Positions 7,438-35,482 are shown, counted from the first letter of the stretch. The stretch is DNA of 64,000 bases from Magallana gigas (GCF_963853765.1 NC_088860.1:22444001-22508000); one strand, 5' to 3'. Notes: generated by a model not told the origin, from the sequence alone. A program made the numbers and translations.

Positions 7438-8913
7438 CTACAACAAATGCCTAACTGCTAATATCTCAACTTCACAGAAATGAATGAGACAGGCGGCATT
7501 ATTATTTATCTGAAAATGGACAAACCGTCCTACAATACATTGCTGACATTCAATTTCCTGTGATAGATTTTGGTTCCCTGTATTGCAGAATATCATCTCG
7601 CTTGTGTTTTTGGTCAAACCAATTCTGACGTCATAGAACGCACATGCATTTACATGGCAACCTGAAAATAAAACAAGAGCAATTCAGAACGAAAACGAAA
7701 CATATAATAGCAACATTATGTTTTTCAGTGACTTTATTACGTATGTGCATTGTAATGTGCTAAAAGAACAAGTTGTACTTTGTGAGGTTTTCTTTCAACG
7801 CGATTTTTAAAATCAAAGGATATAAGCAAAAGAGCCAACAACTTAATGGGGCATGGTCACGATTTTTTTTTAGATAACAAATAATTGTAAGCTCTGTATT
7901 ATGCTTATATCTCTACGTCTGACACTAAAATATTGGTTGATCATTAGATATGCATCTCTTAAACATTGTGAACAATAAAATAAAAAAATTATGTTTTGAC
8001 CAAAATTTTGAGCATGCATTCATTAAGACCAATTTGATGCATAAAAATGATCATTATTTATTACCTATCAAATGTTTTAACTTTAAAACTTATAAAGTTT
8101 ATAAATAAGACATGAAGCACAAACTCTTTGATACGAAAGTTTAGGAATTAAATTATCAGCTTTGAGTTTCATACCATGAGACTACATATAATAAAAACTT
8201 TCTGGTAATATTTTCTTTATAAACGCACCGATGTACCATTTATAATAAGATTGCAAGATTAATTCTTAATTTCAATTTGAATTGGAATGCATGCATGAAT
8301 TCAATGCATGCATTTGAACTCAAGACAGTGAAACTCTTTGTACCTACAATTATAGAAAAAGACTTTCAATTTTCTGATTTGGTAAGCTTGACCAAGATCA
8401 ATCAGGATCCAAGGTTTTATTTCTAGATGTGTTGCTCCGCAAACTCCGAATGCACTCCCCAAATTACCATCGACAATGTATGTTACATTATGATTAACAT
8501 AATTTCCATTGTAGACAGAAGAAGAGTAAACAGTTTTGCCTAAATCAACGTTCTCAGGGGCAACTGAAAGCAAAAAGATGTTAAATATTAACAAGGACTT
8601 AACTAGTATTTCGTGGTTGATGATTCGATCTCAAGCTGTAATGTTATTTTGTCCCAGACTTATATTCTCAACAAAGAAGAACAAAAGAGAGAGAAAGAAA
8701 GAGAGATAAAGAAAAGTTGTATACTTATTAATAGATCACTGTTGGTGAAAGCCTACCTATTTCAGATGAGGATCTTATGCATCTCCTCTCACCCGTATGC
8801 AAAGTTACGCATTCAACATTCTGAACACTGCACTTTTTCATTGGAATAAAGATAATATGAAATTAATAAAATTTTACATGATAAAGTGTAAATTCCAATG
8901 TTACGAAATTTCG

Positions 8914-8968
<55 letters not shown>

Positions 8969-9187
8969 ACTGTAAATTCCTTATTTTACGCGATTACTTA
9001 ATTCGACGATTCAAAGGTTTTCCATCAAATCGCGAGAACCTAAAATCTCGAATGTCTAAATATTATCATAGTTCCATGGTGTTTACATATGTCCGAAAAT
9101 AAATAGCGAGTTTTTAAAATTTGCGAGACGGGCCTCTCGCGATTTTACGCGAATATTAATTCCTCGCGTTTAATTAGGAATTTACAA

Positions 9188-9230
<43 letters not shown>

Positions 9231-9640
9231 TAATGTTTCATATATTTTATCGATTTAAATACGGAATATAAAAGAATCAATGTCAATCTCAATTTTAATT
9301 TTTTCTCTTTCTTAAAGCTTACATTTCCTGCGTAGTGTTCGGTGTTAATATGGTGATAATCAAATTCCTCCGCAGATCGTAAAATAGATGGGTGAACACC
9401 ATCGTCCACAAAATTCAGCTCGCACGCCAAAGACTTGGAATTATAGTTCACTGACCGACATCCAGAGTTTTGGAGACATTTGTCTATGCACATGCGTATA
9501 CCACAATATGGAACAATCTTGAAGGTAGCATTTAGTCGTTTGCCTTCTTCTATCTTCAAAATATACTCGAATTGGTTCGAAAGAATTAGAACTGGATAAA
9601 TTGTTATGATAAATCCGCAACATAGATTCATTTTCCACAT
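7438..9640 (-). CDS. Secreted PAN/Apple + F-type-lectin-fold (FTP/F5-8C-like) protein, copy A, 277 aa, intact
   Basis: Exons 9640-9323, 8832-8757, 8563-8348, 7661-7438 (834 nt, phases 0/1/1, GT-AG). Hydrophobic N-terminus; PAN motif CxxxCxxxxxCxSVNY..CELN; lectin-fold motifs VDGN, PWILIDLG, VGRFVHF, FCEVEI. Confidence 0.88.
8968..9189. mobile_element. Small MITE inserted in a (CTAT)n microsatellite
   Basis: TACTGTAAATTCCTTATTTTACGCGA ... TCGCGTTTAATTAGGAATTTACAATA, with (CTAT)n on both sides (~8916-8967 and ~9189-9227). Confidence 0.7.
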
Positions 9641-11101
9641 TTGTTGATGAATGGTGCATGTATATATTCCACCGGTATGCTAATGTTGAAACTACAGTAC
9701 TTTAAGCAATCGGAATAACTAACAGATTGTGATCTACAACCACGGAAAAGATACCGGGTATTTCATATCAATAACTAGATATTAGCATAATTGATTTTTA
9801 GATAAAAAAAAAAAGCATTGATAGAGACTAAGTGCTACTTTATACCATATGATTTCGAATTTCAGATTTGTGATTCCTTTCTAACACTTTTGCTAAATTA
9901 TTAATCACGTGCATCTCTCCGATAGAACTTTCGTCCGGATTTCATATTAAAGAGCATAATAAATGAACGTTTCAAAGAGCGTTAGTTTGTTATCCTAGAA
10001 TCAAAGCATTATTATATCTAGCTGTGACGAGACTCTTTCTTTGTCATGTTTTGTCTGTGTTGATTTGTTGGGGTTTTTTTGGAGGGAGGGTGTAATATAT
10101 TTTTTTTTTAAATCTTGTTATTGGAATTATATATCCATATGATGTCCAGTTGTAAAACACGAAATTTAATGTTTAACGGTGGGTTTTTTTAAAATCATAA
10201 TAATAAAGCTGCATATTGCATCACTTAGTTTTGAAAATTAATTTAAATAATTATTTACATTTACAAAGCTATATTGCTTCACATAATTCCGACTCTTGTG
10301 TAGTGAGGTAATAATAAATTCAACTATATTATCATTACACTTTAATGTATTAACGAGTCAAAACTTTTATTAAACATTTTCCATAAGTGTATTATATCAT
10401 TTTAATTAAAGCATATAGAATTTATTTTTAAACAAAATGACATTTTGAGGTTCTCTGATCATTCACTCTTACTGAAACCAGATCGCGAAAAGAAGATTCC
10501 GTACTTTTTTGGGTGATACAATTATCTTAATAATCGGCATATACAAGAATATACAAAACTAAAATGTAATGTATGATTGTAATTTGAACTTTCTTTAACC
10601 ATACTTTTTAAAAATTTTCCTTGATAATTTTAGTTCTATACCACATCGCATCTCACACTAAAGCGAATTACTACGCCAACGCCACGCTTACAAAAACGAC
10701 GTCAAAATGTCAACAAATAAACACATTTGTAATTCTGATAAAACACTTCAATTGTTTGCAATAAGTTTGCTTCGATTGAATTTGAATGATCGCAAGATTT
10801 CAAATATCCTAGATATTTACTTTTTTATGTGTCTGGCAACAGGTTTTGGTCTTTTATTACTTCACATAATTTTTATGAATATTTTACATATCCGGTACTA
10901 GACACTAAAATGCATTATCTATCTGAATAACAAAAGTAAGAGTTCACACATGATTTGCAGGCGATTATTTTAAAAAGATTTTTAGAAAAGATTGGACACG
11001 ACTTCCATATCATGTAAATTCGTGGGTCAGAGTAACCTAAGAAATAAATTAATATTGCTCGCCCATTAACAATGAAGATCCAAAAGTGTTTCGCGGTGGA
11101 T

Positions 11102-11399
11102 CTACAACATATGCTTTACCGCAAATATCTCAACTTCACAGAAATGAATGTGACAATTGATAGTATTATTTAACTGGAAGTGGACAAATTGGACCACAAT
11201 GCATTGTTGACATTCAACTATCTTGGATACATATTGGTTGTCTGTATTGCAGACAGTCATTTCGCTTGTGTTTGTGGTCAAACCAATTCTGATGTCATAG
11301 AACGCACATGTAGTATTTTCCACGTGATCTGAATACAGAAGAAGGGCAATTCAGTACGAAACTCATTACATGTGTATATCACTTGCTGTTTTTGACTTG

Positions 11400-11474
<75 letters not shown>

Positions 11475-11973
11475 CAGGGAAATTTACTATATTGGAGCTC
11501 CACCTCCGCCCCGGCCTGGGCTTAAACTCACAACCTCTGTAACCCAATCTCCTAGCAGTGAGCGGCCACCGCACTAACCATTCGGCCATCTTGGCATAGA
11601 TGGCAAACCTAAATGGTCGAATGATTAGCGCGGTCACAGCTCATGGCTAGGAAAGTGGGTTCCAGCAGAGGTCGTAAATTCAAGCCCCGGCCAGGGGTGG
11701 AGGTTGAGCTCCAATACTGTTGCCTACAAAATTCAGCTCGCACGCCAAAGACTTTGAATTATAGTTCACTGACCGACATCCAGAGTTTTGGAGACATTTG
11801 TCTATGCACATGCGTATCCCACAGTATTGAACAATCTTAAATGTCACATTTAGTCTTTTGCCTTCCTCTCTCTTCAAAATATACTTGAATTGGTTCGATA
11901 GAATTAGAAATGGATAAATTGATAAGATTATTCCGTAATTCCATAAATCCATTTTTAGGATTTGTTGATCCAT
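11102..11973 (-). pseudogene. PAN/F-lectin copy B, internally deleted
   Basis: Exon 1 (from 11973) stops after ...CELNFVGNS at ~11716 and is fused to a SINE. The 76-nt exon and lectin exon 3 are absent. The last exon 11328-11102 is intact. Confidence 0.85.
11403..11717. mobile_element. Head-to-head pair of tRNA-derived SINEs with (TA)n tail
   Basis: (TA)n at 11403-11468. Minus-strand SINE ~11470-11595 (GATGGCCGAATGGTTAG head). Plus-strand SINE ~11606-11717. Confidence 0.75.
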
Positions 11974-12549
11974 GGTACAGGTACATATTTCAACGACATA
12001 ATGATGTTGAAACTACAGTGTTGTAAGGTATGGGAAGGACTAATATGCTACAACCTACTGCTACAAAAAGAAATTTTCTATTAAATAATCATATTTCATC
12101 ACAATTGATTTTAAGATCGATGAAAGCAATGATAAAGACCAATCGCTAATTATTGCCATTATTTTGAATTTCAGATTTGTAATTCCTTTGACAATGGCTA
12201 ATAATTAATCACACGGTATGTCTCCTATAGAACTTCCATCTGGATTTTTTGTTAAAGAGCAAAAAAATGAAAGATCTATTAAAAGTGTGTTTCTTTGATA
12301 TCCTCGAATCAAAATATACTGTATCTATATCTAATAAGGTTCTTTCTTTGGTATATTTTGTCTGTGTTGATTTTTTAGAGGAAGGGTGTAATATGTTGGG
12401 TGTATTTAAATCTTGTTATTTGAATTGAATATCCATATGATGTCCAGTTGTAAATAACGAAATTGAATGTAAAAAAAGGTGAATTGTATTATTATGATAC
12501 AGCTGCGTATTGCTTCACTTAGTTTTGAAAATTATTTTGAATAATTATT

Positions 12550-13290
12550 TACATTTACAAAGGTATATAGCTTCAAACCATTCTGACTCTTGTGTGGTGT
12601 AGTTGAATGTTCATATTGGCCACAGACGAAGGAGATGGTAGTCGATCGGGTTCTTTTCCAGCCACGCTCACAGTTCAATGAGAAGTTGTTGATAGTCTTA
12701 TTACGTTGTGTCAGTGTCGTACGTTTAGTGCGTTTGGTAGCTTTCTTTGGTGAATTAAATTTATATTTTAACACTCAGGTTTTCCTTAAAACGTCTTTAG
12801 AATATATGATAACTTGGACTTAAATATTATTTTTCCTGCATTAGATTTTAGTTTTCCATAAAAAAAAAGTTTGTTAAAGACATAGCATTTGGCGTGGCAT
12901 CGCCTCTAAAGTTAGTCAGATATGTAGCTTTGGGCATTTCGGACTTTACTGCTTTTGATAATATGAGTAGAGCAAGTTCTATTTCCAAGAATTCCGTAAA
13001 CTATCTATGCCATTAGTTTTCGATTTGTTCTACCAAAGTTTTTCATGTTCTGACCATAATCAACCAATAGCCACCTTAGTTTATGTCAGATTACAATTTT
13101 CAGACTGTGTTATTATTTATTCGGCATTTTTGGGTGTCTAGCGTGCTACTGTAGAGCTAAAAACGTCATTTCAGTAGAGCAAGACATCTGAGGAAGAGTT
13201 TGTTGAATAATTAAAGTGATAAGTAGTCTCCAGCAAGTTCTAAATAGAAATCAATCGATCGTAAATGAAAATTCTCCTGGATATTGATAA
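12550..13290 (-). pseudogene. Decayed coding-like remnant of unknown origin (second copy at ~23500-24240)
   Basis: One long stop-riddled frame: IQENFHLRSIDFYLELAGDY..LFNKLFLRCLALLK..GGYWLIM..EFLEIELALLILSKAVKSEMPKATYLTNFRGDATPNAMSLTNF. The paralogue keeps an 81-codon stretch (23694-23939). Confidence 0.3.
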
Positions 13291-15784
13291 TTTTCACAAA
13301 TGAATTTAATAATACCGGTTTTTATTAAATCACAAATAACATTCTACATTGAAACACAGTTATATTGAAATATAATTATTACTACTTAGTTTGTTTTTGC
13401 TGGCTTTCATTTAAAAAATAAATAAATGTTATTTTTTTTCCAGGTACATCTATGAAATGAGGAACTTTCAAAACAAAGTTTTTAAAATTGGATTTTTCCC
13501 ATCAGTTATTTTCAATCGATTACAAAAAATCAGATATGTGTGTGCGTGCGCATGCATGTGCATGCGTGAGCTTGTGGTTTTTCTTCTCTGTAACTTGATT
13601 AAATTAGACGAATTTATGCTAGAAAATTAATCATAAAGAGGTGTAATGCTTTTTCCTTTTATTTCGCTTACACAGGTATTTGTAAGGAGATTACCCTTTA
13701 CTATAGATAAACACAGGTACTTGTCGTCATGTGATTTTTTAAACCTAGATACTGAATTTTAAATGATGTATCTATCAATTAATTTGTCATAAAATCAGGG
13801 AACCTGCATCAAGAACTGAATATGTTAAACCTTATGTATAAATTCAGCTGCTATTCTGAATTGTGATTACTTCCCGCAAAATGTGATGAACAAGGATTGG
13901 TTATTTGACTGTACATGTAGTATTATTCAACGTGCTCATATTCATACTCATACTTAGAATTTAACAAGAGATTTTTGAGAAAAAGAAATCCAGCATATTA
14001 GATACATATATTCTTATCATACTTTGAATAAAAATTGATATGCATATATATTGTAAGAAATATAACTGAGACACCTGGTTATTGTGTTTAAGGGGATATG
14101 CGGCCATCTTGTATATTTGAGGATAAGTATGTCAACATTAATTTTTTTTTTTAACTGGCTTGTTTTTTACCGCAACTGACAAAACTGTTGTCAAAAGATT
14201 TAAAAGCAAAACATATGAGATTCTACATGTTGTTTTGTATGCAAATTATGCATTAATATCAGGACAATGTCTTTTTAATCAATTAAAGCAACTGTCGAAC
14301 TGCGCATCTACAGACTCATTTTGAAGATCTAAAAATATAAAGGGGGTTCATTGTCCTCTCTACAACAAAGAACTCTGTGGAGTTTATGAATAGCAAAAAA
14401 TTACGACAGTGTGCTAGATAAACATCTCTACCAGGTAATGGAAATATTTATATTATATAACACTGTTTCAATGGGAATTTCTCTTTAAAATATGAAAAAT
14501 TCATCAAGATTATTGAAAGCTTTAAAACTTTTGTTTATTATTGACTTTACAATTACAACATAAAGACAAAGATAGAACAAGATTTATAGGATGAGTTAAA
14601 TGTATTTGAAATCTGTGCATACTGTCATAGTAGGGAATACAAACGATGGAGCAATTTTCATCGAATAATATACTTATGTATATGCTACAAAAAAAGTAAT
14701 GAAAGAGACATCGAATGTGTCATTAGCCTCTCTTTCCTAACTCTCTTACATTTGTCATTAATAAAAGTGCATGTACAAACACAAATACAAAAAAACAAAA
14801 CCAAACAAAATACCGTATATAACTAGTTTAATCAAAGATTAAAAAAGTAATTTACTTGTGTATGATTACAACAAATCAATTACCAACTTATTATTATATT
14901 ATAATCTATAGTCATAGTTCTGAAAAAAAACACCCATAAAACAAACATAGGAAAGGTATAGATTTGTGTATCAAATTCAACACGGATTGTTTTGAATTGA
15001 CATTACTTTTTTCTATAAAATATAACGTCGATACAGGTGTTCTAAGTATAGACTGGATTTTTCTTGTTCTTAAAATAGATCCCATGCCGACTGATAAAAA
15101 TGGGCACTCAATTTTGAGGCAAAGTCACAATATAAATGTGCAATATTCAAACTTTTCCTGAACAGAGGACACCAATGAACCCCCTACAGATTTTATTTTA
15201 GATTTTTAAATCTTCAAAATAAGTTTGTAGCTGCCCAGTTCTGAATAGGGAAATTGCTGTATTCATTTAATCCATTGATAAATATTTTCTACAAATTTAC
15301 AATGTTTTCTTCTTCGAATAATATAATTGTCCAGATTCACCATTCGATGATCGCAACGTTCGGTGATTAACCGGTTAACCGAGTACTCACTAAAAATACC
15401 TATATATTCAATGTGTAGAAAGATTAAAAACAAGAAATGAACGTGTTTACAGATCATTATTTTAAGATTATATAAAAAATGAAGATGGTTGCGATCACAA
15501 AAAAGTTAACACATAACTTACATGAGTAAGTGGGTTTTTTTAAAACCTAATAAATAAAAAAAACGCCATTTGATGTTTCAAGGTTACTTTTTAATGTTTA
15601 AACAACTTAGTCTTATATTAAATCTAGGGGTTTTGACATGTTCTTCTGATAGAGACTATTATTTCAAGCAAAATAAGAAATATTTGGAAACACGTTTGTT
15701 GAAATGTAAATTTGTGGGTCAGAATAATCTAAGAAATTATTTAAGATTGATCTCCCACAAACAATGATGTGATTCGCGATGTGT

Positions 15785-16065
15785 CTACAACATATGCTTT
15801 ACTGCAAATATCTCAACTTCACAGAAATGAAGGTGGCAGTTGACATTATTATTTAGCTGAAAGTGGACAAATTGTCCAACGATGCATTGTTGACATTCAA
15901 CTATCTTGGATACATATTGGCTGTCTGTATTGCAGAGAGTCATTTCGCTTGTGTTTGTTGTCAAACCAATTCTGATGTCATAGAACGCACATGTAGTGTC
16001 CGGGTAACCTGAAATCAGAAGAAGAGCAATTCAGTACGAAACTCATTAAATCACTTGTTGTTTTT

Positions 16066-16120
<55 letters not shown>

Positions 16121-16939
16121 CATAGTGAATGATATACATATAGCACAGGGAAATTCCCTATATTAGAGCTCCACCTCCGCCCCGGCTGGGGCTTGAACTC
16201 GTGACCTCTGGAACCCACTCTCATAGCAATGAGTGGCCACTGCGCTAACCATTCGGCCATCTAGGCACAGATGGCTAGCCTAGATGGATGAATGGTTAAC
16301 GTGGTGGCCGCTCGTGGCCGCTAACCATTCGGCCATCTAGACATATATGGCAAGCCTAAATGGCCGAATGGTTAGCGCGGTGACCGCTCATTGCTAGGGG
16401 AGTGGCCTCCAGAGTTCATTTGTGACGCGCCAAGCAAAAACCTCCCTTAACTGAAAATATTGACAATTTCAGCATCTTATTGATTCTAATAAAGCTTTTT
16501 CTTCTTCTTCCAATGTTATACAGCATTACATATATTTCTCATTGTTAGGGTGTTGCAAGAACGCATTCAAATGAAGAAGTATATGCTTTGACGTCGATCG
16601 CACAAATAAAGGCTACATAATTGTTGCTATATTATTAACTACAGATATTTTAATAACAGTCCCTTAATCTTATTTTGCTTCAGTGTATTTCAAACAATGA
16701 ATAATAGTTTTTGACATATGGAATGGTACAAATGATTCAAATTCATAAAATATATAATGAATTGAATCTCTGTATAGGAACATATTTTTCTTTCTTATAA
16801 AACATATTATTTCTACACAATGTTGCAGAATGAAAGGCAGAATATAGCTGAGATCATCATTTAGAAAACGGTTCACATTTTATAACCTTGCGATTGAAAC
16901 AATTATACTGTCTCAAAAAGAATACAATAGTATATCTTG

Positions 16940-16987
<48 letters not shown>

Positions 16988-19782
16988 ATTTGATATTTTT
17001 CCGTTAATATTTTTTTAAATGTTGGATAACAAATTAACAATGACAGAAATACCTGGAAATTGCAAAAAAAAAAAAAAAGAAACAAAAGACTTTTTATTAT
17101 AAAAATGCATTTAGTTTATCTCCTACACTGTGAAATTACTGAACATATTACACAATTTTAAAGTCAATTGTTATTTAATTTTCATGGGTTTCATTGGCAT
17201 GTGAAACAGGAGAATGAAAATGGCGGAGATATAAAGGTATAATACAATGTATTTTCCTGTGTGAAAGGAATGCACAATCGTTTGAATGAATATCGATGAA
17301 ACATTAATCAAATCAATGAGAATATAAATGAATTAAAATTGTTTTATTTGCATGTGGATAGACATTAGTTTCAACGAAAAATCTAAACAATGGGAGTAGA
17401 AATAATTTAGAGTAGTTTCTTTCTGCATGTGCATCTGCCAAGCGGAAGGACAGAACAATTTGTTCTTAAAGAAATATATGTTTTATTATTTTCATTGGGG
17501 GGGGGGGGGGGGGCAATAATACAAAATAACAAAAGTATTTCTATAAAGAATCTGACCATAAAATAAACAATTTAATATTGTCACAATAGGATAAAAAAGG
17601 AGTTACATTTTCCATACCATGAAAACATGTATTTTTTCTAAAAATCAAAAATTTGGGATTTAGTCTTGAAACGCAATCTTTTGGGTGTTATAAATGCAAA
17701 TATATTGAATATTTCAGAAAAGATTTCTCATAGATTATGATTAGCTTTTGTACACTGCAACACATGTATCTCGCGATGATTTTTTTCTGTTTTGTTGAGC
17801 GACGCCATAAACTACCATACGCGAATTGAAGTTGAAAGTTATTTCTAGAAATGCGTGTATTGCCTTTAGGTGCCTAGTTCAGTGCTTGAATTCAGTTTAT
17901 CAATAGTGTATACGTGCAGCATGCATGTATCTTCATATGTTAACATTAATTAGATTAATTAAAAGTTTAAAGTAAATCTGAAAATCGATATTTTAAATCA
18001 AAAGGTGTTAAATTACATCGTGTTTTCAGATCACAGAAAAAAAATGAGACTTGAAAGCGCCCGACATTTACATTCGATCGTCAGTTCAGCATCGCGTCTG
18101 CTTAGAAACCAAAGATGATTGGAATTATGGTAATTTATTAATTTATCATCAAATATTTTTGGTATTTCAGTAAATTCCTTTATATTTTATTGAGGTCAAA
18201 TAAATGAAAATAACGTATCGTTTTAAATTTAGCTTGGAAGCCTCGATATTTTTCTTGTTCCGCAAAACTAAGAACGACATTCTTTTTTATCTATTTAAAA
18301 AGGACAAATATTTCAACACTTGTTTAGCCTTAATCTATTTATTACTAAATTACGCTATTTTCTAATAAAGAAAATCATTGATGATGCAAAACTTTTTTGA
18401 GGCATAGCAGAATTTCCTTCATAACTATGTAATTGATTCTTAAAACACAGAACTGAAACACATATGGCAGATAAGAATACTTAATATACAGCGTTTACGA
18501 TGTTGTGATACATAGACACGTATTTTAACGTTACGTCATAATTAAGATAAGGCCCTTATCTTACCTCATCATAACGGTGGTTTTTGCTTGGTGCGTCACA
18601 TTTGTAAAAAAACAAAACCTTTAGACCATACTGTAATCTAAATACGTAATTTTCATATTTATATATTTGAATTCAAGTCAGAAGGTATATTTGTACCTAA
18701 ATTATAGACAACGACGTTCAACTGTCTGATTTGGTAAACTTGACCTAGATCGATCAGTATCCATGGTTTCATCTCGATATATGTTGATCCACAAATTCCA
18801 AACGCTCTCCCAGAATTCCCATCAACGATGTACTTTACATCATGATCTGCATAATTTTCTTCGTAGACGGAAGAAGAGTGAACAGTTTTACTCAATGCAA
18901 CGTTCTCAGGGGCAACTGAAGACAAAAAAATGCTCGGGAATAAACAAAAAGCAAAGACATATCATTCTAATGGTTGGTGTTGCAATGCCACTTTAGATCN
19001 NNNNNNNNNNNNNNNNNNNNNNNNNNNNNNNNNNNNNNNNNNNNNNNNNNNNNNNNNNNNNNNNNNNNNNNNNNNNNNNNNNNNNNNNNNNNNNNNNNNN
19101 NNNNNNNNNNNNNNNNNNNNNNNNNNNNNNNNNNCACCGTTGGTAAAGCCTACCCATTTTAGATGAGGATCGGATGCATTTTTTCTCACTTGTATGCAAA
19201 GCTATGCATTCAACATTCTGAACACTGCACTTTGTTACACATGAAAAAAAGAAATAACCATATCAACTAAAAGTTACAGTTGATAGAATTAGAACAAGAT
19301 ATTACAATGAAATTCTCTCTCTCTCTCTCTCTCTCATTATATTTAGTTTTTATATTTTCGGAGTTATTGAAAAACATTTAGAGAGACAATCCTTCTATCT
19401 CGGATTCTCTTTTTCACTTCTCTTTGATAATGCTTACATTTTCTTCCAAGTGCTCCGTGGCAATATCGAGATATTCAAATTCAACTGCGGACTGTAACAG
19501 AGATGGATAAGAACTGTGGCCCACAAAATTCAGCTCGCACGCCAAAGACTTCGAATTATAGTTCACTGACCGACATCCAGTGTTTTGGAGACATTTGTCT
19601 ATGCACATGCGTATCCCACAGTATGGAACTATCTTGAATGTCGCATTCAGCCTTTTGCCTTCTTCTCTTTTCAAAATATACTCAAATTGGTTCGATAGAA
19701 TTAGAAGTGGATAAATTGTTATGATAAATCCGCAACATAAATTCATTCTGTATATATGTTGGTACATAGTACATATTTTCAT
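15785..19782 (-). CDS. Secreted PAN/Apple + F-type-lectin-fold protein, copy C, intact
   Basis: Exons 19782 (or a downstream ATG)-19438, 19229-19154, 18915-18697, 16008-15785. Phases 0/1/1, GT-AG, no stops. N-gap only in an intron. Confidence 0.88.
16069..16416. mobile_element. tRNA-SINE cluster: (TA)n tail, minus-strand SINE, and internally duplicated head-to-head heads
   Basis: CATTCGGCCATCTAGGC-ACAGATGGCTA-GCCTAGATGGATGAATGG at ~16250-16295, with a near-repeat of the same arrangement at ~16325-16375. Confidence 0.75.
19000..19134. other. Assembly gap (N run); the equivalent position in copy D holds a (GA)n tract
   Basis: 135 N. Flanks match ~33260 and ~33345, which enclose (GA)n. Confidence 0.95.
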
Positions 19783-20051
19783 TGCACTAACATGATGATG
19801 TTGAAACTACGTCACTCTGCAAATGCCAATCGATGTTTCATGTGCTCTTGGTATATAGATGTACTGCCACAAGAAAAACTTGATATAAAAATCTATCTGA
19901 GATCAATGAAATAAATGTCAAACGCAAATGCTACAGTATGTTACATAATTCATTTCTGTGTTTCATTTTACTGCAATGTCATAATTTTGCTGATTAATTA
20001 AAACTTCATTACGTACGTCTGGGTTGGCAAGCCTCGCGAATATATACATTA

Positions 20052-23060: not shown

Positions 23061-25534
23061 TTTCTCTCACTATCATGCAATTAATGTATATTGTAAATTT
23101 TGTTCTGAAACAGAGATACTTATACAAGGTATATAAACAATCATTCTGAGAGTATTGCATAAGCAATACACGTCCCCTACCTATATGGAGTTCTGAAGAG
23201 AATATTTTATCTTTTTTGTAAATTAGATGTGCTGTAAATTCCTTATTAAACGCAATGAATTTATATCCGCGTAAAATCGCACACATCGCAGATTCTAAAA
23301 CTTCGCCATTATTTTCTGAGAGTTGAGAACTATAAGAAATATGGATAAATCATCCGTGTTCGCGATATTATATTCTCGCGATTTGATACAAAACAGCAGG
23401 ATCGCGGAAGTAAGTACTCGTGTAATATATGTAATTTACAGTATGACTCGTGTGATCCCCCCTTTTGCAGCTGTTCAATGAGATAGCAATCTGATCACCC
23501 TTCTCCCCTAACCAGTTTAAAGCTCAATGGCAGTCGTTCTCTGTTGGTCGTTATCGACTTGCAGTTCAATGAGAAGTTGTTGATAGTCTTCTAATGTTGT
23601 GTCAGTTGTTGTCTCCAGTTTTGTACATTTGGGTCTACAGTTAATCTGTCGTAAGTTTAATGCGTTTGGCAGCTTTCTTTGGTGAATTAGCACTCAGGTT
23701 TTCCTTAAAACGTCTTTAGATTTTATGTTCAGTGTTTGAAAATAATATTTTGATTCAAATAACTTGGACTTTATTATTATTTTTCCTGCATTAGATTCTG
23801 GTCTTTCCATAAAAAAAAAGTTTGTTAAAGACATAGCATTTGGCGTGACATCGCCTCTAAGGTTAGTCAGACATGTAGCTTTGGGCAATTCGGACTTTAC
23901 TGATTTTGATAATGTGAGTAGGGCAAGTTCTATTTCCAAGAATTCCTCTATGCCGTTAGTTTTCGATCTGTTCTACTGAAGTTTTTCATGTTCTGGCCAT
24001 AATCAACCAATAGCCACCTTAGTTTATGTCAGATTTAGAATTTTCAGACTGTGTTATTATTCACTCGGCATTTTTGGATGTCTGGTGTGTTTTTGTAAAG
24101 CTAAAAACGTCATTTCGGTAGAGCAAGATGTCTGATAAGGAGTTTGTTGAATAATTAAAGTGGAAAGTAGTCTCCAGCAAGTTCTAAATAGGATTCAATC
24201 GATCGTAAATGAAAATTCTCCTGGATATTGATTTTCACAAATGAATTTAATAATACCGGTTTTTATTAAAATCACAAATAACATTATACATGGAAACACA
24301 GTAATATTGAAAAAAATTTATTACTTCTTAGTATGTTTTTGCTGGCTTTCATTTAAGAAATGAATGTTATTTTTTTCCAGGTACATCTATGAAATGAGGA
24401 ACTTTCATAACAAAGTTTTAAAAAAATTGGATTTTTTTCCATCAGTTATCTTCAATCGATTACAAAAAAAATCAGATATACGTGTGCATGTTGTTTTTCT
24501 TTTCTGTAACTTGATTAATTATAAATCAGACGAATTTATGCTAGAAAATTAATCATAAAAAGGTGTAATGCATTTTTTTTATTTCGCTTACACGGGTATT
24601 TGTAAGGAAAGTACCTTTCACTATAAATAAACACAGGTACTTGTCTTCATATGATTTTCTAAACCTAGGTACTGAATTCATAATATCAAGTAACTTGTCA
24701 TAGAATCAGGAAACCTGTATCGAAAAATGAATATGTAAAACCGTATATGTATAAATTCAGCTGATATTCGGAATTGTGATTACCTGTACTTCCCGCAAAA
24801 TGTGATGAACAAGTGTTGGTTTATTGACTTTACATGTAGTATTATTCGACGTGCTCATATTCATACTCATACTCAGAAAGATATTTTTGAGAGAAAGAAA
24901 TCCAGCATATTAGATACATATATTCTTATCATACTTTGAATAAAAATGCGTATATTGTAAAAAAGAAAACTGAGACACCTGGTTATTGTGTTTAAGGGGG
25001 TGTGCGGCCATTTTGTATGTTTGAGGATAAGTATGTCAACATTATTTTTTTTTTGAACTGGCTTGTTTTTGACCGAAACTGACCAAAAACTGTTGTCAAC
25101 AGATTTAAAAGCAATACATATGAGATTCTACATGTTGTTTTGTATGCAAACTATGCAAACAAGAACAGGACAATGCCTTATTAATCAACTAAAGCAACTG
25201 TCGAACTGCGTACCTACAGACTCATTTTAAAGATCTAAAAATATGAAGGGGTTCATTGGTGTCCTCTCTACAACAAAGAAATCTGTGGAGTTTATGAATA
25301 GCAAAAAATTACGATAATGTGCTAAATAAACATCTCTACCAGGTAATGGAAATAGTTATATCACACTGTTTCAAAGGTAATCTCTTTATAATATGACAAA
25401 TTCGTCAAGATTATTGAAAGCTTTAAAACTTTTGTTTATTTTTGACTTTACAATCACAACATAAATACAAAGATCGAACGAGATTTACAGTTAAATGTTT
25501 TTGAAATCTGTGCATACTGTCATAGTAGGGAAAT

Positions 25535-26520
25535 CAGTATTTGCGCTTAACTTTTTTTACTACAAGCCCATAGGGCAAGTGAGGTTACAAAATCTGGTAG
25601 CCCAAACAAAATTTTATTAGCCCTAATCAAGAACAATAAAAACAACTTGACAAAAAATGACTTATCATATTAAATTATATGATAATAATATTTAGTTATC
25701 CTTTTTATTCAAAAAATTACCTTTCACAATTCATGATTTTTTTTATCTTTGATATGTTGTAGCCAGTGATGATAAGAAATTTCTATACTTATCAATTATT
25801 TCAAATTCTGCATGTTAAAAGCAGAAATGGGTCAATAAATATCTGATTCCTGATTATCAACTCATCTCAGTACTTTGATTCAACACGTTGTCAATGATAG
25901 ACTGGCAATGCCTGCCAGACTGGCAATGCATGATATCGTAGGATAGAGACAAAGGACCAATATGTTTCAATGACGAAGAAATAAGAGCTATTTGCATTAT
26001 ATCGCCCATTATCAATTCACGTTTGTACTCAAAATCCACTCCAAGAGATCCGATGATAGAAAGGGTCTTCTCGCTTTGCGAGCTGGGTTTTTCTAAAAAT
26101 AGATTTTATGCTTAACATGGAACAAGGTTTTCCCCGTGTAAGTTGTCGAATTCATGGGCGGCGATTGAACAAAAACTACTTTGATTTGTTTTATTTTGTA
26201 AATATCAAGAAAAACTTTAGAAATATATGTGTAAAAAATTGTTTAACCATTTCAAATTGACAATCACGCAAACAAAAGAGGTTAATGCATGCACTATTTT
26301 CATTAGCGCATGAATAATGTAGTGCAAAATATTCGCAGAAACAGCTATGATAACAAGGACTCGCTCGCGAAGCGAGCCGACTCAAAAATGGTATCATAAT
26401 TTCAATTACCGCCGGAAACAACGTACTAGCCCATCGGGCATGCGCGAATATAATATTTGGTAGCCTGATCCTGATTTTACTAGCCTCGGTCATCGGGCTA
26501 CCGCTTAATTTCGAAGACTG
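25535..26520. mobile_element. Non-autonomous DNA transposon, CAGT...ACTG ends, 6-bp TSD GGAAAT
   Basis: Absent at ~14635 in unit 1. GGAAAT on both sides. Subterminal TAGCCC/GGGCTA motifs. Confidence 0.8.
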
Positions 26521-26708
26521 GGAAATACAAGCGATGGAGCAATTTTCATAGAATAATATACATATGTATATGCTATAAAAAATAGTAAGGAAAGAGACAT
26601 CGTATGTGCCATTAGCTCCTCTTTCCTTACTCTCTTACATTTTTCATTAATAATAGTACATGTACAAACATAAATACAAAAATACAAAACCAAACAAAAT
26701 ACTGTATA

Positions 26709-27528
26709 TCTATACTACTATATTAAGATAATAGACTCAAATTTTTGGGCTTTAATACCGATAAATCGGAAGAGAACCGTCTTTTGTTTTATGTATTTTA
26801 AACATCATTGGTACGTGAAGATTACCAATTTGATTTTATTTTTTCTCAATCAAGCTTCGCTAATTATTAATCAACGAAACTTCATTAAGTAATTCCGGAA
26901 ATCATCTGATTTTTGGGGATTTTACAATCTTGCGCATGCGCATTACATTCACGCTAAATCAAAGGAGGCTCTTTATTTTATGTTTCCACAATATCATATT
27001 TGAAAAACTCAGAAACAATAAAACAAATGCGTATAAATTTTCATTGGATATTTTTTTCTGTTCATCAAAAAATACGGGAGATAACTCGTACACAGTGCAT
27101 TTACAATAAAAAAAAAAACGAGAGTTTCGAATGTCAACATGGTGTATAAAAAACGTTGTTGAATAAATGTTGAATTCTGCAATTACAGAATTAAACTTTT
27201 CGAAGAAAGGTATTTACAGCTTCAAAGTGGTTTGTTAAGAACATTTTGACTGTTATTTTCAATGAAACTTTATTTATGTTCTCCAAAATCGTTTTGGAGC
27301 GATTCTGCAATTTTCTGCTACATTATTAATATGGGAGGCATTTTATCTGTGGTGAAGGCCTTTCCCGATACACAGTTAGATTATTTCAACGCAGCAGAGT
27401 GTAGTGAAATTAATAGCATTATTGTAGGCTTAAAGCTTGGTTATACAAAATGTCAACAATATACGGATTGCCGATGTATCTATTCCGATATGCAATGTCA
27501 ACCCGTACACACACGGGTCAAAGTCTAG
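26709..27528 (+). mobile_element. Non-autonomous Helitron, 820 bp
   Basis: A|TCTATACTACTATATT ... ACCCGT-ACACAC-ACGGGT hairpin ... CTAG|T. No TSD. Absent at ~14818 in unit 1. Confidence 0.9.
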
Positions 27529-29793
27529 TATGTATAACTAGTTTAATGAAAGATTAAAAAAAGTAATTGACTTGCGTATGATTACAACAAATCAATTACC
27601 AACTTAGAAAGAATCTTCTAAAATATTTTCACGGCTGTAAGGGGAATGTGCGGCCATCTTGTACATTTAGGGATAAGAATTTAAACAATTCTTGAACTGG
27701 ATTGTTTTTGTCCGAAACTGGCCAAAAATATGAAGTCCTACATGTCATTCTGTTTGAAAAGTAAGCATGAAAAGACAAGACAATGCTACACACTTATTTG
27801 AAGGTTTAAAATATGAAGGGGGTTCATTGGTGTCCTCTCTAAAACCATTTATATATATTTGTCTGTGTCTATGGAGGTACATTGTAGGTATGGGGGTATA
27901 TTTTTATTGTAATATATTTACACAATGTATACTTTTTTAATTTAAGACAATCACTTTTTGGACCCCTACCCCACTTCTAAAAAGAATTTATGATAACCTA
28001 TAATTATCATTCTGAAAAAAAAACACCATAAAACAAACATAGGACAGGTATAGATTTGTGTATCAAATTCAACACGAATTGTTTTGAATTGACATTACTT
28101 TTTTCTATAAAAATATAACGTCAATGTGTCTCTATAGACACAGGTGTTCTAAGTATAGACTGGATTTTTTTTGTTCTAAAGATAGATCCCATGCCGACTG
28201 ATAAAAATGGGTACCCTATTTTGAGGCAAAGTCCCAATATAAATGTGCAATATTCAAACTTTTCCTGACCAGAGGACACCAATGAACCCCCTACAGATTT
28301 GTTCAGATTTTAAAATCTTCAAATAAGTCTGTAGCTGCACAGTTCTGATGAGGGAAATTGTTGTATTCATTTAATGCCATTGGTAAATATTTTACAAATT
28401 TACCATGGTTTTTTTTCTTCGATTAAGATAATTGTGCAGATTCACTATTCGATAATCGCATCGTTCGGTGGTTAACCGGTTAACCGAATACTCACTAAAA
28501 ATACCTATGAATAATGTGTAGTAAGATTAAAAACAAGAAATGAACGTGTTTACAGATCATTATTTTAAGTTTATATAAAAAATGAAGATGGTTGCGATCA
28601 CAAAAAAGTAAACACATAACTTACATGAGTAAGTGGGTTGTTTTTTAAATCTAATAGATAAAAGAAAATTCCATTTGATGTTTCAAGGTCACTTCTTAAT
28701 GTTTAAACAACTTAGTCTTGAATTTAGGAGTTCTGACATTTTTCTCCTGATAGAGACTATTATTTCAAGCAAAATAAGAAATATTTGGAAACACGTTTGT
28801 TGAAATGTAAATTCGTGGGTCAGAATAACCTAAGAAATTAATTAACATTGATCTCCCACGAACAATGATGTGATTCGCGATGTGTCTACAACATATGCTT
28901 TACTGCAAATATCTCAACTTCACAGATATGAAGGTGACAGTTGACATTATTATTTAACTGAAAGTGGACAAATTGTCCCACGATGCATTGTTGACATTCA
29001 ACTATCTTGGATACATATTGGCTGTCTGTATTGCAGAGAGTCATTTCGCTTGTGTTTGTTGTCAAACCAATTCTGATGTCATAGAACGCACATGTAGTTT
29101 CCGTCTGAATACAGGAGAAGAGCAATTCAGTTGGCTTGCCTATATGGCCGCTCATTGCTAGGGGAGTGGCCTCCAGAGTTCAAGGCCAGAGATCTCGTAA
29201 GATCATTTGTGACGCGCCAAGCAAAAACCTCCCTTAACTGAAAATGTTGACAATTTTAGTATTTTATTGATTCTAATAAAGCTGTTTTTTCTTCTTCCAA
29301 GGATATACAGCATTACATATATTTCTCATTGTTAGGGTGTTGCAAAAACGCATTCAAATGAAGAAGTATATGCTTTGACGTCGATCGCACAAAAAAAGGA
29401 TAGTACATAATTGTTGCTAAATTATTAACTACAGATATTTCAATAACAGTCCCTTAATCTTATTTTGATTTAGTGTATTTCAAACAATGAATAATAATTT
29501 TTGGCATATGGAATAGTACAAATGATTCAAATTCCTAAAATATATAACAAATTAAATCTCTGTATAGAAACATATTTTTTTCTTTTTTATAAAACATATT
29601 ATTTCTACACAATGTTGCAGAATGAAAGGCAGAATATAAATGAGATCATCATTTAGAAAACGGTTCACATTTTATAACCTTGCGATTAAAACAATCATAC
29701 TGTCTCAAAAAGAATACAATAGTTTATCTTGAGTAATTTTAAAAACGATTTGCTTTCTTTAATATTGTACATACATTTACTTATGTTGTATAT

Positions 29794-29796
<3 letters not shown>

Positions 29797-29853: not shown

Positions 29854-29858
<5 letters not shown>

Positions 29859-31108
29859 GATATTTTTCTGTTAATATTTTTTTAAATGTTGGATAACAAA
29901 TTAACAATGACAGAAATACCTGGAAACTGCATTTTTTCAAATTGATTTTAAAAATAAAAATTGATAGGAAAAAAAGAAACAAAAGACTTTTTATTTTAAT
30001 AATGCATTTAGTTTATCTCCTACACCGTGAAATTACTGAACATATTACACAATTTTAAAGTCAATTGTCATTTAATTTTCATGGATTCCATTGGCATGTG
30101 AAACAGGAGAATGAAAATGGCAGAGATATAAAGGTATAATACAATGTATTTTCCTGTGTGAAAGGAATGCACAATCGTTTGAATGAATATCGATGAAACA
30201 TTAATCAAATCAATGAGAATATAAATGAATTAAAATTGTTTTATTTGCATGTGGATAGACATTAGTTTCAACGAAAAATCTAAACAATGGGAGTAGAAAT
30301 AATTTAGAGTAGTTTCTTTTTGCATGTGCATCTCCCAAGCGGAAGGACAGAACAATTTGTTCTCAAAGAAATATATGTTTTATTTTCATTGGGGGGGGGG
30401 GGGGGATAATACAAAATAACCAAAGTATTTTTTTTTTATAAAGAATCTGACCATTAAAAAAAACAATTTAACATTGTCACAATAGGATAAAAAAGGAGTT
30501 TCATTTTCCATACCATGAATACATGTATTTTGTCTAAAAATCGAAATTTGGGATTTAGTCTTGAAACGCATTCTTTTGGGTGTTATAAATGCAAATATAT
30601 TGAATATTTCAGAAAAGATGACTCATCGATTATGATTAGCTTCTATCCACTGCAACACCTGTATCTCGCGATGATTTTATTCAGTTTTGTTGAGCGACGC
30701 CATAAACTACCATGCGCGAATTGAAGTTGAAAGTTATTTCTAGAAATGCGTGTATTGGCTTTAGATGCCTAATTCAGTGCTTGAATTCAGTTTATCAATA
30801 GTGTATAAATGCAGCATGCATGTATCTTCATCTGTTTACATTAGTTAGATACTATCATATAAAAGTTTCTTTTTTGTTCTATTTATTGCTTCAGTTATAG
30901 CTAAAGTACAGAACATTCGACATGCTTACTACAACACAACTATCTAGTCAATAAAATACAGGAACTAAAAATGTTTTTCATCTGAAAATATATTTGTTTG
31001 TTGGTTTAAAGTAAAACTGTAAATTGATATTTTAAATCAAAAGGTCTTAAATCACATCGTGTTTTCAGATCACAGAAAAAAATGAGACTTGAAAGCGCCC
31101 GACATTTA

Positions 31109-31581
31109 TAGTCTGTCCCAAGATATTTATGCTGCATATTTGAACGATTTTTAATAAAAATACACATACCTGTGACTGAAGTGCAATTAAAATCGACGAA
31201 AGGGAAAATTCCCAAGATAACTTCATTCACACATTATCATTTTTCCCTCGTAAAAATTCACATGAACGAAAACAGATTTCCTACGGAGATTTATAATGGG
31301 GAATGTTGACATCTTTTCTCCATTCGGAAATACTCGGGACCCCTCGCGCAATTTTTCAACGTTATCATCCGGGCGTCTTCATCTCCTTGGCAATGGAAAA
31401 ACCTCGTAGACTTTTTATTTTTAGCCCTGTACTGATACCCGACGAGCGAGAGGGGGCGTTTCAAAGGGGAAATCTTGGGATTTTTTCATACTATTGAATG
31501 AACATCGTCTGAACCAAGAGGTATTTATAAATATTGAATAATTTAAGAAAATATGCGGCAAAAATATCTTGGGACAGACTA
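31109..31581. mobile_element. MITE with TA TSD (Tc1/mariner-type)
   Basis: TA|TAGTCTGTCCCAAGATATTT ... AAATATCTTGGGACAGACTA|TA. Empty TA site in unit 1 at ~18069. Confidence 0.9.
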
Positions 31582-31790
31582 TAGATTGGATCGTCAGTTC
31601 AGCATCGCGTCTTCTTAGAAACCAAACATGATTGGAATTATGATAATTTATCATCAAATATTTTTGGTATTTTTGTAAATTCCTTTATATTTTATTTAGG
31701 TCAAATAAATGAAAATGACGCATTGTTTTAATATTTAAATTTAGCTAGGAAGCCTCGATATTTTTCTTGTTCCGCACAACCAAGATCGAC

Positions 31791-31823
31791 TTTATTACTT
31801 ATTAGGTTAGTTACTGACTCACT

Positions 31824-31856
<33 letters not shown>

Positions 31857-31877
31857 CGGCTCGGCGAAGCCGAGCCG

Positions 31878-31910
<33 letters not shown>

Positions 31911-32473
31911 AGTGAGTCAGTAACTAACCTAATAAGTGTTTTGTTTTCCCGAGGACTAACAAGCGACATATATATTCACAAATAGCGATGAAGCCACGTA
32001 CAAGATGCCTAACATCTTGTCAAATTTAACTCATTCAAGCTCTTCAAAATTTTCAATCTCACCTTTCAAATACTCTTTAAAAATCCTTGCTTCACCCATG
32101 TTTACTTACAATGTTTTGTTGATAATCAATTTTAAATGTTTTCTCCCTTTCCTCTGCAGAGATTTGAGCAAATTTCGACGCTGCCATTTTGTTCTGCTCC
32201 AGACAAAACAATGTGACGTCAATATTCAAAGGGCAACTACTCTAATTTTAAAGAATTTCAAAGGGCAACTACTCCAAATACTTTAAAAACTTACGGCATG
32301 CGGTTTATGTATTAAATACTATGAAATGTCGAAATGAGTAAGCGAAGCGTCGACCAATGACGGCCATATTGCCTAATATTATTTCTCACAGAACAAATAT
32401 AGAGATATATGAGGCAATCAGGTGCTATGTTTAAACCAATGAAAATGTGACATTTCAGTCCAAGGGAAAACAA
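31791..32473. mobile_element. TSD-less insertion beginning with a perfect 141-bp palindrome
   Basis: Absent at ~18275 in unit 1. Arms 31797-31865 and 31869-31937, loop GAA. Internal TTGTTTTCCCGAGGACT is an imperfect inverted copy of the terminal AGTCCAAGGGAAAACAA. Confidence 0.85.
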
Positions 32474-32882
32474 TCTTTTTTATCTATTTAAAAAGGACAA
32501 ATATGTCAACACTTGTCTAGTCTTAATCTAATTATTACTAAATTACGCTATTTTCTAATAAAGAAAATCATTGATGATGCAAAACTTTTTTAAGGCATAG
32601 CAGAATTTCCTTCATAACTATGTAATTGATTCTTAAAACACGGAAGTGAAACACGCATGGCAGATAATAATACTTAATATGCAGCGTTTACGATGTTGTG
32701 ATAATTAGACACGTATTTTAACGTTAGGTCATAATTAAGATAAGGCCCTTATCTTACCTCATCATAACGGTGGTTTTTGCTTGGCGCGTCACATTTGTAA
32801 AAAAAAAACAACAAAAAACCTTTAGACCATATTGGAATCTAAATACGTAATTTTCATATTTAAATATATGAATTCAAGTCAG

Positions 32883-32886
<4 letters not shown>

Positions 32887-32928
<42 letters not shown>
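32887..32928. repeat. (TA)n tract between two copies of a ~25-bp duplication near the copy D exon 3 donor
   Basis: TGAATTCAAGTCAGAAGGTA(TA)n TTGAATTTAAGTTAGAAAGTCTAT; the motif is single-copy in copy C (~18670). Confidence 0.85.
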
Positions 32929-32931
<3 letters not shown>

Positions 32932-33276
32932 AATTTAAGTTAGAAAGTCTATTTGTACCTACTATTAAAGACAACGACGTTCAATTTTCTGATTTGGTAA
33001 ACTTGACCTAGATCGATCAGTATCCATGGTTTCATCTCGATATATGTTGATCCACAAATTCCAAACGCTCTCCCAGAATTCCCATCAACAATGTACTTAA
33101 CATCATGATCTGCATAATTTTCTTCATAGACGGAAGAAGAGTAAACAATTTTACCCAATGCAACGTTCTCAGGGGCAACTGAAAACAAAAAAATGCTCGG
33201 GAATAAACAAAAAGCAAAGACATGTCATTCTTATGGTTGGTGTTAGAATGCCACTTTAGATCAGACGTATTCAAGG

Positions 33277-33331
<55 letters not shown>

Positions 33332-35482
33332 GTAATTATCAATTGGTCACCGTTGGTTAAAGCCTACCCATTTTAGATGAGGATCGGATGCATTTTTTCT
33401 CACTTGTATGCAAAGCTACGCATTCAACATTCTGAACACTGCACTTTGTTACACATGAAAAAAAGAAATAACCATATCAACTAAAAGTTACACTTGATAG
33501 AATTAGAACAAGATATTACAATGAAATTCGTTCTCTCTCTCCCTCTCTCTCTCTCATTATATTTAGTTTTCATATTTTCTGAGATATTGAAAAACATTTA
33601 GAGAGACAATCCTTCTATCTCGGATTCTCTTTCTCACTTCTCTTTGATACTGCTTACATTTTCTTCCAAGTGCTCGGTGGCAATATGGAGATATTCAAAT
33701 TCAACTGCGGACTGTAACAGAGATGGATAAGAACTGTGGCCCACAAAATTCAGCTCGCACGCCAAAGACTTCGAATTATAGTTCACTGACCGACATCCAG
33801 AGTTTTGGAGACATTTGTCTATGCACATGCGTATTCCACAGTATGGAACTATCTTGAATGTCGCATTCAGCCTTTTGCCTTCTTCTCTCTTCAAAATATA
33901 CTCAAATTGGTTCGATAGAATTAGAAGTGGATAAGTTGTTATGATAAATCCGCAACATAAATTCATTTTGTATATATGTTGGTACATAGTACATATTTTT
34001 ATTGCACTAACATGATGTTGTTGAAACTACGTCACTCTACAAATGCTTATCGATGTTTCATGTGCTCTTAGTAGATATACTGCCACAAGAAAAACTTGAT
34101 ATAAAAATCTATCTGAGATCAATGAAATAAATGTCAAACGCAAATGCTACAGTATGTTACATATTTCATTTCTGTTTTTCATTTTACTAAAATGTCATAG
34201 TTTTGCTGAATTAATAATTCCCTTTTTCCATTAAAACTTAATTACTTACGTCTTGGTTGGCAAGCCTCGCGAATATATACACCATTTCAACTCGTTGGAT
34301 AAAGCAAATATAAAATCACACAATTATAGATATCCTCTATATATAATCAGCTCTTCAATATCCCTCGGGATATTTTGTCTATGTGGATTTTCTTTTTCTT
34401 TTTTTCTTTTTTTTGGGGGGTTGTTGGAAGGATGTGAGTAACGTGATTTTAAAACCCCGACTGTCATTTTAATCAAAACATAAATAAATATAATTAGTTT
34501 GATAAATACCCCGATGATGTCAACGTTAAATTATAAATATTGATTTATGTTCGTTTATATCTGGCTTCAAAAATTCTTAAATCGCTAGACAATATCATAT
34601 CATTACGTTAGACATTTTAATTACCAATATTTGAACACATTTTTGAATAATAAAATTAATGCAATTTGATTTGACACACGTATGTTTTTTAAAACTATAA
34701 ATGGAATAGATATCTAATCCTCTCCGATATGCTTATTTAAATATACAGTATTTTCTACCATTTTAATTACTAAAATGATGCTTACCAATAAGGTTTCTAT
34801 ATTATAAAAACAAATTTAAATTAGTAACATGTAGTACTTTAAGTTCGGAATATGAATCTTATGTCTGAAAATGTGAAAAAGATTTGTTGTTCGTACTTTC
34901 TGTTTCTTATTATTCAGACATTTACTAAGTAAGTAAAAGTCAAGTCACGACTTTGAATATATGATTCAAAATGTTCTACATAAAGTGGAGATATTTTTTG
35001 TGCTGCGAAATAATTCATATACATCATATGTATGCTGGCAAAACATTTATTGTTATGGAGTCTTCGCCTTGGCAAGATTCACGTTGTTGAATAGAAAGTG
35101 TTCATTTACTGGAACAGCAATTCCGTTTATTGCGCATGCCTAATCACGGTTTCCTCTTTGTAGGTATCTTCTTTAGGAGATTTGCGCTTGACTTCAACCT
35201 TGGTGGGAATAAACATAACGGTATATACCTTAGTAATCAAGCATGGACTCATTAATTATTAAAAATTGTTAATTATAAAAAGACACACCGGTAAGCTTAA
35301 GTTGCACATTTATATGCAAAATTCATGAAATTAAATTATGATTTCACAGTTCTCAGAAATGAAGTCCATTAAAACATACTTTTGATACGTGGTTGTTGAG
35401 AATATTTAAGTATGTTTCCGAGGCCCAGACTGGCATAAATATCTTCAAAAGAAAAATGTGAATCGTTTAAATCAAATAATAA

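Follow-up and report, generated by a model that had tools for sequence, protein, structure and literature searches.

A tandem oyster gene cluster encoding putative secreted PAN/Apple proteins with an F-type lectin domain that lacks the fucose-binding triad

What might an F-type lectin domain (FTLD) do once the residues that hold its sugar have been replaced? The question is raised by a stretch of oyster DNA, 64,000 nucleotides of Magallana gigas (GCF_963853765.1 NC_088860.1:22444001-22508000; hereafter the window), which has the composition of AT-rich eukaryotic DNA, with a GC content of about 31%. A first-pass annotation had proposed that it holds a tandem family of secreted proteins in which a PAN/Apple domain precedes an FTLD without its fucose-binding triad. 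Four minus-strand gene copies, A to D, do lie within 7438-33987, and the gene layout is one of four exons, the first encoding a signal peptide-like segment and the PAN/Apple domain, the second consisting of 25 codons with three Cys (the 3-Cys exon), and the last two together encoding a single FTLD; the tandem arrangement and the domain order are therefore as proposed. We consider it likely that the cluster encodes secreted PAN/Apple proteins with a triad-less FTLD, which would act as extracellular binders by means of a re-purposed face of that domain.

A tblastn search with the spliced A protein found no more copies in the 64-kb window, and genome-wide searches with the FTLD exon and the PAN exon found no further close copies in the 564-Mb assembly; the former search returned one 48%-identical FTLD exon on a different chromosome, and the latter about 65 distant PAN exons. 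The closest annotated sequence is chromosome CM046779.1 of Crassostrea (Magallana) angulata, which is collinear with the window at 94-97% identity. The annotated orthologues are P0152, P0170-P0172 and P0176, with intact ones in C. angulata and C. gigas, and a homologue from Saccostrea cucullata (P0169, 279 aa, 39-46% identical) shares this succession of PAN, 3-Cys and FTLD parts and likewise has no triad. The cluster is real, tandem and specific to the oyster family Ostreidae. Its copy number varies, with at least six annotated loci in C. angulata against two intact copies in the M. gigas assembly, and copies A and C are 73% identical.

Is the C-terminal domain an FTLD at all? In the fold and database searches, the window proteins were represented by the database orthologues P0170 and P0152, which are about 98% identical to them. 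Pfam F5_F8_type_C_2 matches exon 3 of copy A alone with an E value of 1e-5, and the long isoform of the A type scores 28.7 bits against a cut-off of 27.8. Over its whole length the FTLD aligns with FTLD repeats from many proteins, and its significant sequence matches in the PDB are to F-type lectins only, with end-to-end alignments to 3CQO (E 5e-6) and 1K12 (E 6.7e-6, residues 3-141 against 8-151). In an AlphaFold2 model of P0170, built from a 76-row alignment, the FTLD reaches a predicted local distance difference test score (pLDDT) of 80-93, which falls to 61 in the altered loop. Searched with Foldseek, the model finds 1K12 (eel agglutinin, AAA) as its first match (E 2e-11, TM 0.78 on the target), then 3CQO, 2J1T and 3LE0 (to E 6e-9), with CBM32 and discoidin structures later. 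Thus, AAA, MsaFBP32 (3CQO), SpX-1 of S. pneumoniae (2J1T) and lectinolysin (3LE0) are the top matches in structure as well as in sequence, and they share the jelly-roll fold. The F-type fold that had been claimed is borne out by this ranking, the fold recovered being the F5/8C-FTP one, and at the level of the model the jelly-roll assignment is confirmed. Exon 4 taken by itself has no Pfam match, and a PDB match to an aspartic protease (E 0.88) was judged spurious.

Much of the canonical domain is still in place. The oyster FTLD shares with canonical F-type lectins the N-terminal NVA..G..SS start, the h2DGx cation motif, the PW..DL core, the equivalents of Cys50 and Cys146, and the C-terminal CEVE strand. 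The cation motif is kept as IVDGN in A, C and D and is not conserved in the Saccostrea homologue, and the alignment retains Cys at AAA positions 50, 146, 108 and 124. Unlike the canonical lectins, the family carries three extra, family-specific Cys and a PAN/Apple fusion; C and D lack the vicinal Cys82-Cys83 pair, and only copy A has a CC pair. The resulting Cys count of the FTLD is odd, nine in A, seven in C and five in Saccostrea. Judged from sequence, this would point to a free or intermolecular Cys as much as to the disulfide-closed pocket that the first-pass annotation had thought possible.

The fate of the sugar site is the central point. The fucose motif has been defined as H-X24-R-X-D-X4-(R/K), that is, His52, Arg79 and Arg86 of AAA, and the h2DGx motif is defined in the same source (PMC5712786). 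Residues were mapped by aligning the copies with AAA and with canonical FTLDs in HMMER and MAFFT; the chain numbering of 1K12 agrees with the published His52, Arg79 and Arg86, and the stretch from the conserved Cys50 to the PW motif aligns without indels. His52 is replaced by Ala in copy A and by Ser in C and D, Arg79 by Cys in A and Leu in C, and Arg86 by Ala in A and Thr in C, while Asp81 corresponds to Tyr in C. The alignment of copies A and C shows no Arg or Lys in the loop expected to carry RxDxxxxR, and the loop, Asn78-Gly95, is shorter than in AAA, by one residue in C and by two in A. The loss of the triad is accordingly more complete than the first-pass annotation supposed, as His52, Arg79 and Arg86 are all replaced. 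That annotation had placed a His in A and a Tyr in C and D at the His52 position; those residues align instead with Ser54, two positions past it. Nor does its Cys at the second Arg in all copies hold up, since Arg86 is Thr in C and Ala in A and the conserved Cys stands opposite Ile87. Its reading of the Arg79 position was right for the Cys of A and the Leu of C, whereas the Ser given for D lies outside any demonstrable product, D having no open frame.

Could alternative splicing restore the motif? The triad loop is encoded exactly at the junction of exons 3 and 4. A second donor for exon 3 of copy A lies 21 nt further on and moves the exon end to 8327; it is used in the C. angulata RefSeq protein P0152 and adds seven residues, CRYKEFH. 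The DNA of the donor region is identical in the M. gigas window and in C. angulata, and both donors are therefore available. Neither the short nor the long form of A recreates RxDxxxx(R/K). The RefSeq model of A may use a donor other than the one seen in RNA.

Triad-less FTLDs have already been described, in the sperm bindin isoforms of C. gigas and in Drosophila CG9095/furrowed (Vasta et al. 2017, PMC5712786), so the idea is less new than was first implied. In these proteins, as in the oyster cluster, the basic triad is replaced and the fold kept (PMC5712786). The bindins differ in having one to five tandem FTLDs without PAN, and their diversity arises within one gene rather than among tandem genes with one FTLD each; unlike bindin, the cluster copies are under purifying, not positive, selection in pairwise comparisons. 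The closest other FTLD exon in the genome, that with 48% identity, belongs to paralogues on chromosome 4 (P0017 and P0155; C. gigas LOC109618795 and C. angulata LOC128161303), which are similar in size at 272 aa and likewise combine a Cys-rich N-terminus with a single FTLD. Their FTLD intron interrupts the same loop six codons further on, and they keep His52, Arg79 and Asp81 and have a basic residue shifted by one position from Arg86. No homology to the cluster's PAN module was detectable in their N-terminal region. The same two-domain composition recurs in cnidarian proteins with PAN and F5/8 type C domains ("lactadherin-like" in the ESM Atlas, 230-283 aa), which carry ordinary F5/8C signatures; the language-model similarity of these clusters (0.95, with 183-191 shared features) is a lead only. 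RefSeq and UniProt list the cluster genes as uncharacterised ("uncharacterized protein LOC..."), and UniRef fragments are named "Apple domain-containing" or, in one case, "Fucolectin tachylectin-4 pentraxin-1 domain-containing". Literature searches with six LOC identifiers of the loci found no paper mentioning them, and PAN/Apple is not among the partner domains listed in F-lectin reviews. The cluster is a variant of the F-type lectin family and should not be classed as a fucolectin, since the sugar motif by which such lectins are defined was looked for and is absent.

In the N-terminal module, Pfam PAN_1 matches A, C, D and the orthologues at E 6e-9 to 9e-8, with 28-36 bits against a cut-off of 21.4. 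The translations show a PAN core with the pattern C-x3-C-x5-C-x11-C plus an outer Cys pair, and exons 1 and 2 together encode eight Cys, a number constant in Crassostrea and Saccostrea. From the Apple-domain pattern, the outer PAN Cys are presumably paired with the 3-Cys exon, which probably completes the outer Apple disulfide. This module is the best-conserved part of the protein, being identical over long stretches among A, C and D (dN 0.09-0.10). In the AlphaFold2 model, the spacer encoded by the 3-Cys exon has a pLDDT of 31-51. A search of a set of 5.8 billion proteins with the PAN exon returned one near-identical fragment only, a result limited by the length window.

The gene models of copies A and C are both open, with canonical splice sites. 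In copy A, exon 1 (9323..9640, minus strand) starts at 9640 or at 9631 (MNLCC...), encodes a hydrophobic signal-like segment and a PAN/Apple core with five Cys (PAN_1, E 6e-9), and has the donor GTAAGC; the 25-codon 3-Cys exon follows (8757..8832, phase 0 in and phase 1 out), then exon 3 with the first half of the FTLD in its short form (8348..8563), and exon 4 with the second half and the stop (7438..7661). The spliced model of 277 aa is 97.8% identical to P0152. RNA-derived contigs from run X1 cover two of its junctions, one running from 8833 to 8757 and joining 8757 to 8563, the other skipping 7662-8347 and joining 8348 to 7661, both with GT..AG introns. They verify two details of the first-pass annotation, the 25-codon 3-Cys exon and the exon 3-4 junction YN-C-CHVNAC. 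An unspliced contig is also present in these data. A shorter spacer exon with a GTGAG donor at 8793 was considered and is ruled out by the junction at 8757.

Copy C, also on the minus strand, consists of exon 1 (19438..19782), an open reading frame (ORF) with the signal-like segment and PAN/Apple core; the 3-Cys exon (19154..19229); exon 3 with the first half of the FTLD (18697..18915); and exon 4, whose coding part is 15785..16008. Its spliced model has 287 aa and is 98.3% identical to RefSeq P0170. Splicing of the C type is independently backed by the RefSeq proteins and by two full-length cDNA contigs from other oysters, L008 (283-aa ORF) and L009 (348-aa ORF). L009 matches 19865-19438 at 98.4%, exon 3 at 98.6% and 16013-14782, the last match placing the end of the 3' untranslated region at about 14782, and the junctions of both cDNAs define exon 2. 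The assembly has a gap in intron 2, an N run at 19000..19134 at a (TC)n microsatellite, which begins 19 nt past the donor of exon 2 and leaves about 85 nt to the acceptor of exon 3. Its two flanks are collinear with copy D, where the counterpart is about 85 nt of mostly (TC)n, and L009 splices exon 2 to exon 3 across it. Thus, the gap is intronic and the reading frame of copy C is unaffected.

Selection on the coding sequence bears on whether these are working genes. Copy A compared with C or D gives a dN/dS ratio of 0.28-0.30, with dS about 0.45, and C compared with D gives 0.25, with dS 0.06; all four exons stay below 0.45, with omega of 0.25-0.42 for the FTLD exons. As the Saccostrea homologue is also triad-less, the loss of the triad is old within the Ostreidae; this protein (P0169) has also lost Cys50 and Cys146 together. 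The sequence comparisons support genes that are constrained and maintained rather than decaying, and the description of the binding face as re-purposed fits the dN/dS of 0.25-0.30, the intact orthologues and the triad-less Saccostrea homologue.

How would such proteins work? Each gene would give rise to a secreted protein of about 29 kDa, an eight-Cys PAN/Apple N-module followed by a single FTLD, and these proteins would serve as extracellular recognition or adhesion molecules. The variable top loops of the FTLD may bind a ligand other than canonical alpha-L-fucose, and the Apple module may offer a second surface for binding or for oligomerisation. A non-fucose ligand, like a role in immunity, shell or gametes, is conjecture. 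Several observations weigh against our reading at one point or another. Secretion is predicted solely from the N-terminal hydrophobic segment, and the PAN part of the AlphaFold2 model, although it shows a strand-strand-helix-strand-strand order, has a pLDDT of only about 50-60. The model itself is that of residues 31-287 of P0170, a C. angulata orthologue 98.3% identical to window C, rather than of the window's own protein. With the FTLD-type Pfam models, the scores of the C, B and D types stay at 21.7-22.8 bits, below the cut-off of 27.8 (the F5_F8_type_C_2 / F5_F8_type_C gathering score). Exon 1 of copy A had no RNA coverage in the four runs mapped, and the RNA support for copy A comes from two contigs of depth 2-3 in a single run whose RNA nature was guessed. 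Finally, the frameshift of copy D, described below, could be an assembly error.

These points have to be set beside the other ways in which the locus might be explained. The FTLD might still bind fucose, or another simple sugar, through substitute residues, and so be an ordinary lectin with a variant site. In keeping with this, the domain retains its fold and cation motif as well as the architecture of its top loops, the differences among copies cluster in the loops around the canonical site, as expected of a binding face still in use, and the loop gains one Arg and one Lys in the long A isoform (P0152). However, all three of the basic residues that hold the fucose 4-OH are missing, the loop is shortened, the long isoform lacks a restored RxDxxxx(R/K), and the triad-less bindin isoforms have been judged unable to bind fucose at that site (PMC5712786); we regard sugar binding of this kind as quite unlikely. 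The purifying selection on the FTLD exons (omega 0.25-0.42) and the retention of the domain across the Crassostrea-Saccostrea split argue in turn against an FTLD that is an inert scaffold, a pseudo-lectin, with the function residing in the Apple/PAN module or in covalent oligomerisation through the odd Cys. Such a scaffold would nevertheless agree with an N-module that is the best-conserved part (dN 0.09-0.10), with an odd number of FTLD Cys in all family members, and with the loss in Saccostrea of the DGN cation motif and the Cys50/Cys146 pair; we regard it as unlikely.

It might also be supposed that the cluster consists of decaying pseudogenes, or is an annotation artefact, without functional product. 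B is deleted and D frameshifted in this assembly, expression is very low in the mapped runs, and truncated isoforms are annotated in relatives (P0173 and P0174). Yet both A and C have open frames and canonical splice sites, L008 and L009 are full-length cDNA contigs, dN/dS lies at about 0.28, and orthologues are intact in three species; we regard decay or artefact as very improbable. If the proteins do bind something, as we propose for the re-purposed FTLD, then the F-lectin scaffold has been re-used without its sugar triad and has been under selection since the Crassostrea-Saccostrea split. If this is true, PAN-FTLD joins the known FTLD mosaics (CTLD, pentraxin, CCP and FA58C), and A and C form a small, tractable pair for asking what a triad-less FTLD recognises. 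The practical yield consists of corrected gene models and of copy loss, in B and D, that is now flagged in this assembly.

The two damaged copies differ in their lesions. Copy B belongs to the family by an exon 1 remnant whose 3' end is missing (11716..11973, minus strand, found by tblastn and aligning only with C 19513-19810) and by exon 4 (11102..11328, minus strand; B 11012-11647 aligns with C 15704-16318), and it is a remnant only. Copy B lacks about 3.1 kb of C, in which exons 2 and 3 are lost together with the intervening introns and the last part of exon 1: no match in B to C 16412-19513 was found, nor any exon 3 match for B in the genome. As exons 2 and 3 are absent, copy B is a pseudogene in this assembly; intact B-type genes are present in C. 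gigas (P0176 and P0179). Copy D keeps all four exons on the minus strand, namely exon 1 (33658..33987, an ORF with PAN_1 at E 9e-8), the 3-Cys exon (33368..33443), exon 3 (32959..33178, ending at 32963 or 32959 depending on the donor) and exon 4 (28886..29104). When D is aligned with window C and with the D-type gene of C. angulata, its exon 4 shows a 5-bp deletion directly after the acceptor. Enumeration of donors and acceptors found no open frame for copy D with homologous splice sites; barring an assembly error at this point, the D of this haplotype is probably a pseudogene. In-frame variants of D were rejected as unsupported, for they need either cryptic acceptors, with 11-17 residues gained from intron sequence, or upstream donors inside exon 3, at the cost of part of that exon.

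The junction at which the triad loop is encoded is also the most variable spot among the copies, with indels of 0, +3 and -5 nt at the start of exon 4 and of +1 nt at the end of exon 3. The family might diversify its binding loop through such junctional variation, by alternative 5' splice sites together with indels, an idea that we think doubtful. If true, the family would have a counterpart, based on splice sites, to the diversification through introns that has been described for oyster bindin. The sites 33270-33335, 8660-8720 and 19310-19335 / 33530-33555 recall the GA and CT microsatellites beside oyster bindin FTLD exons (PMC5712786).

Some further features of the copies and their surroundings may be recorded. 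The duplicated unit reaches far past the coding exons: C and D share 86-90% identity in their 3' flanks (12851-15295 against 23799-28393), and the upstream flank of C (19.8-22.2 kb) matches the upstream flank of D. Since the flanks of C and D are alike on both sides, the repeat unit is about 14 kb. Upstream of D, the 5' end of L009 matches three short non-coding exons on the minus strand (36888-36961, 36509-36578 and 35376-35444; blastn 90-96%), and these (35376..36961) lie outside the span given in the first-pass annotation. An element resembling a short interspersed nuclear element (SINE), with a tRNA-like segment GGCCGAATGGTTAGTG... followed by a (TA)n run, lies within intron 3, a short way ahead of exon 4, in B (11480-11650) and in C (16051-16330). 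The deletion in copy B ends inside this element, and a sequence similar to it by eye abuts exon 4 of copy D (29110-29200). At the C. angulata D-type locus (L020:5118-14132), intron 3 holds about 9 kb without counterpart in the window, and the D-type RefSeq protein of that species (FNMGYPDTT) is not simply derivable from the end of exon 3 in the L020 DNA.

In intron 1 of copy A, at 8907-9236, two (GATA)n arrays flank an insert of about 200 bp with inverted ends TGTAAATTCC...GGAATTTACA; this insert is absent from C and D. Within it, the segment 9135-9181 reaches a very high read depth, up to about 10,000, in each of the four runs, with reads that run into unlike sequence. The insert looks like an abundant repeat of the miniature inverted-repeat transposable element (MITE) kind, and its coverage not like expression of copy A. 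Between copies C and D, a plus-strand ORF (27262-27528) encodes 88 aa and is Cys-rich. Beyond copy A, the stretch at about 525-5722 on the plus strand is collinear with the next C. angulata gene, which is annotated with an Exo_endo_phos domain and has a 368-aa product.

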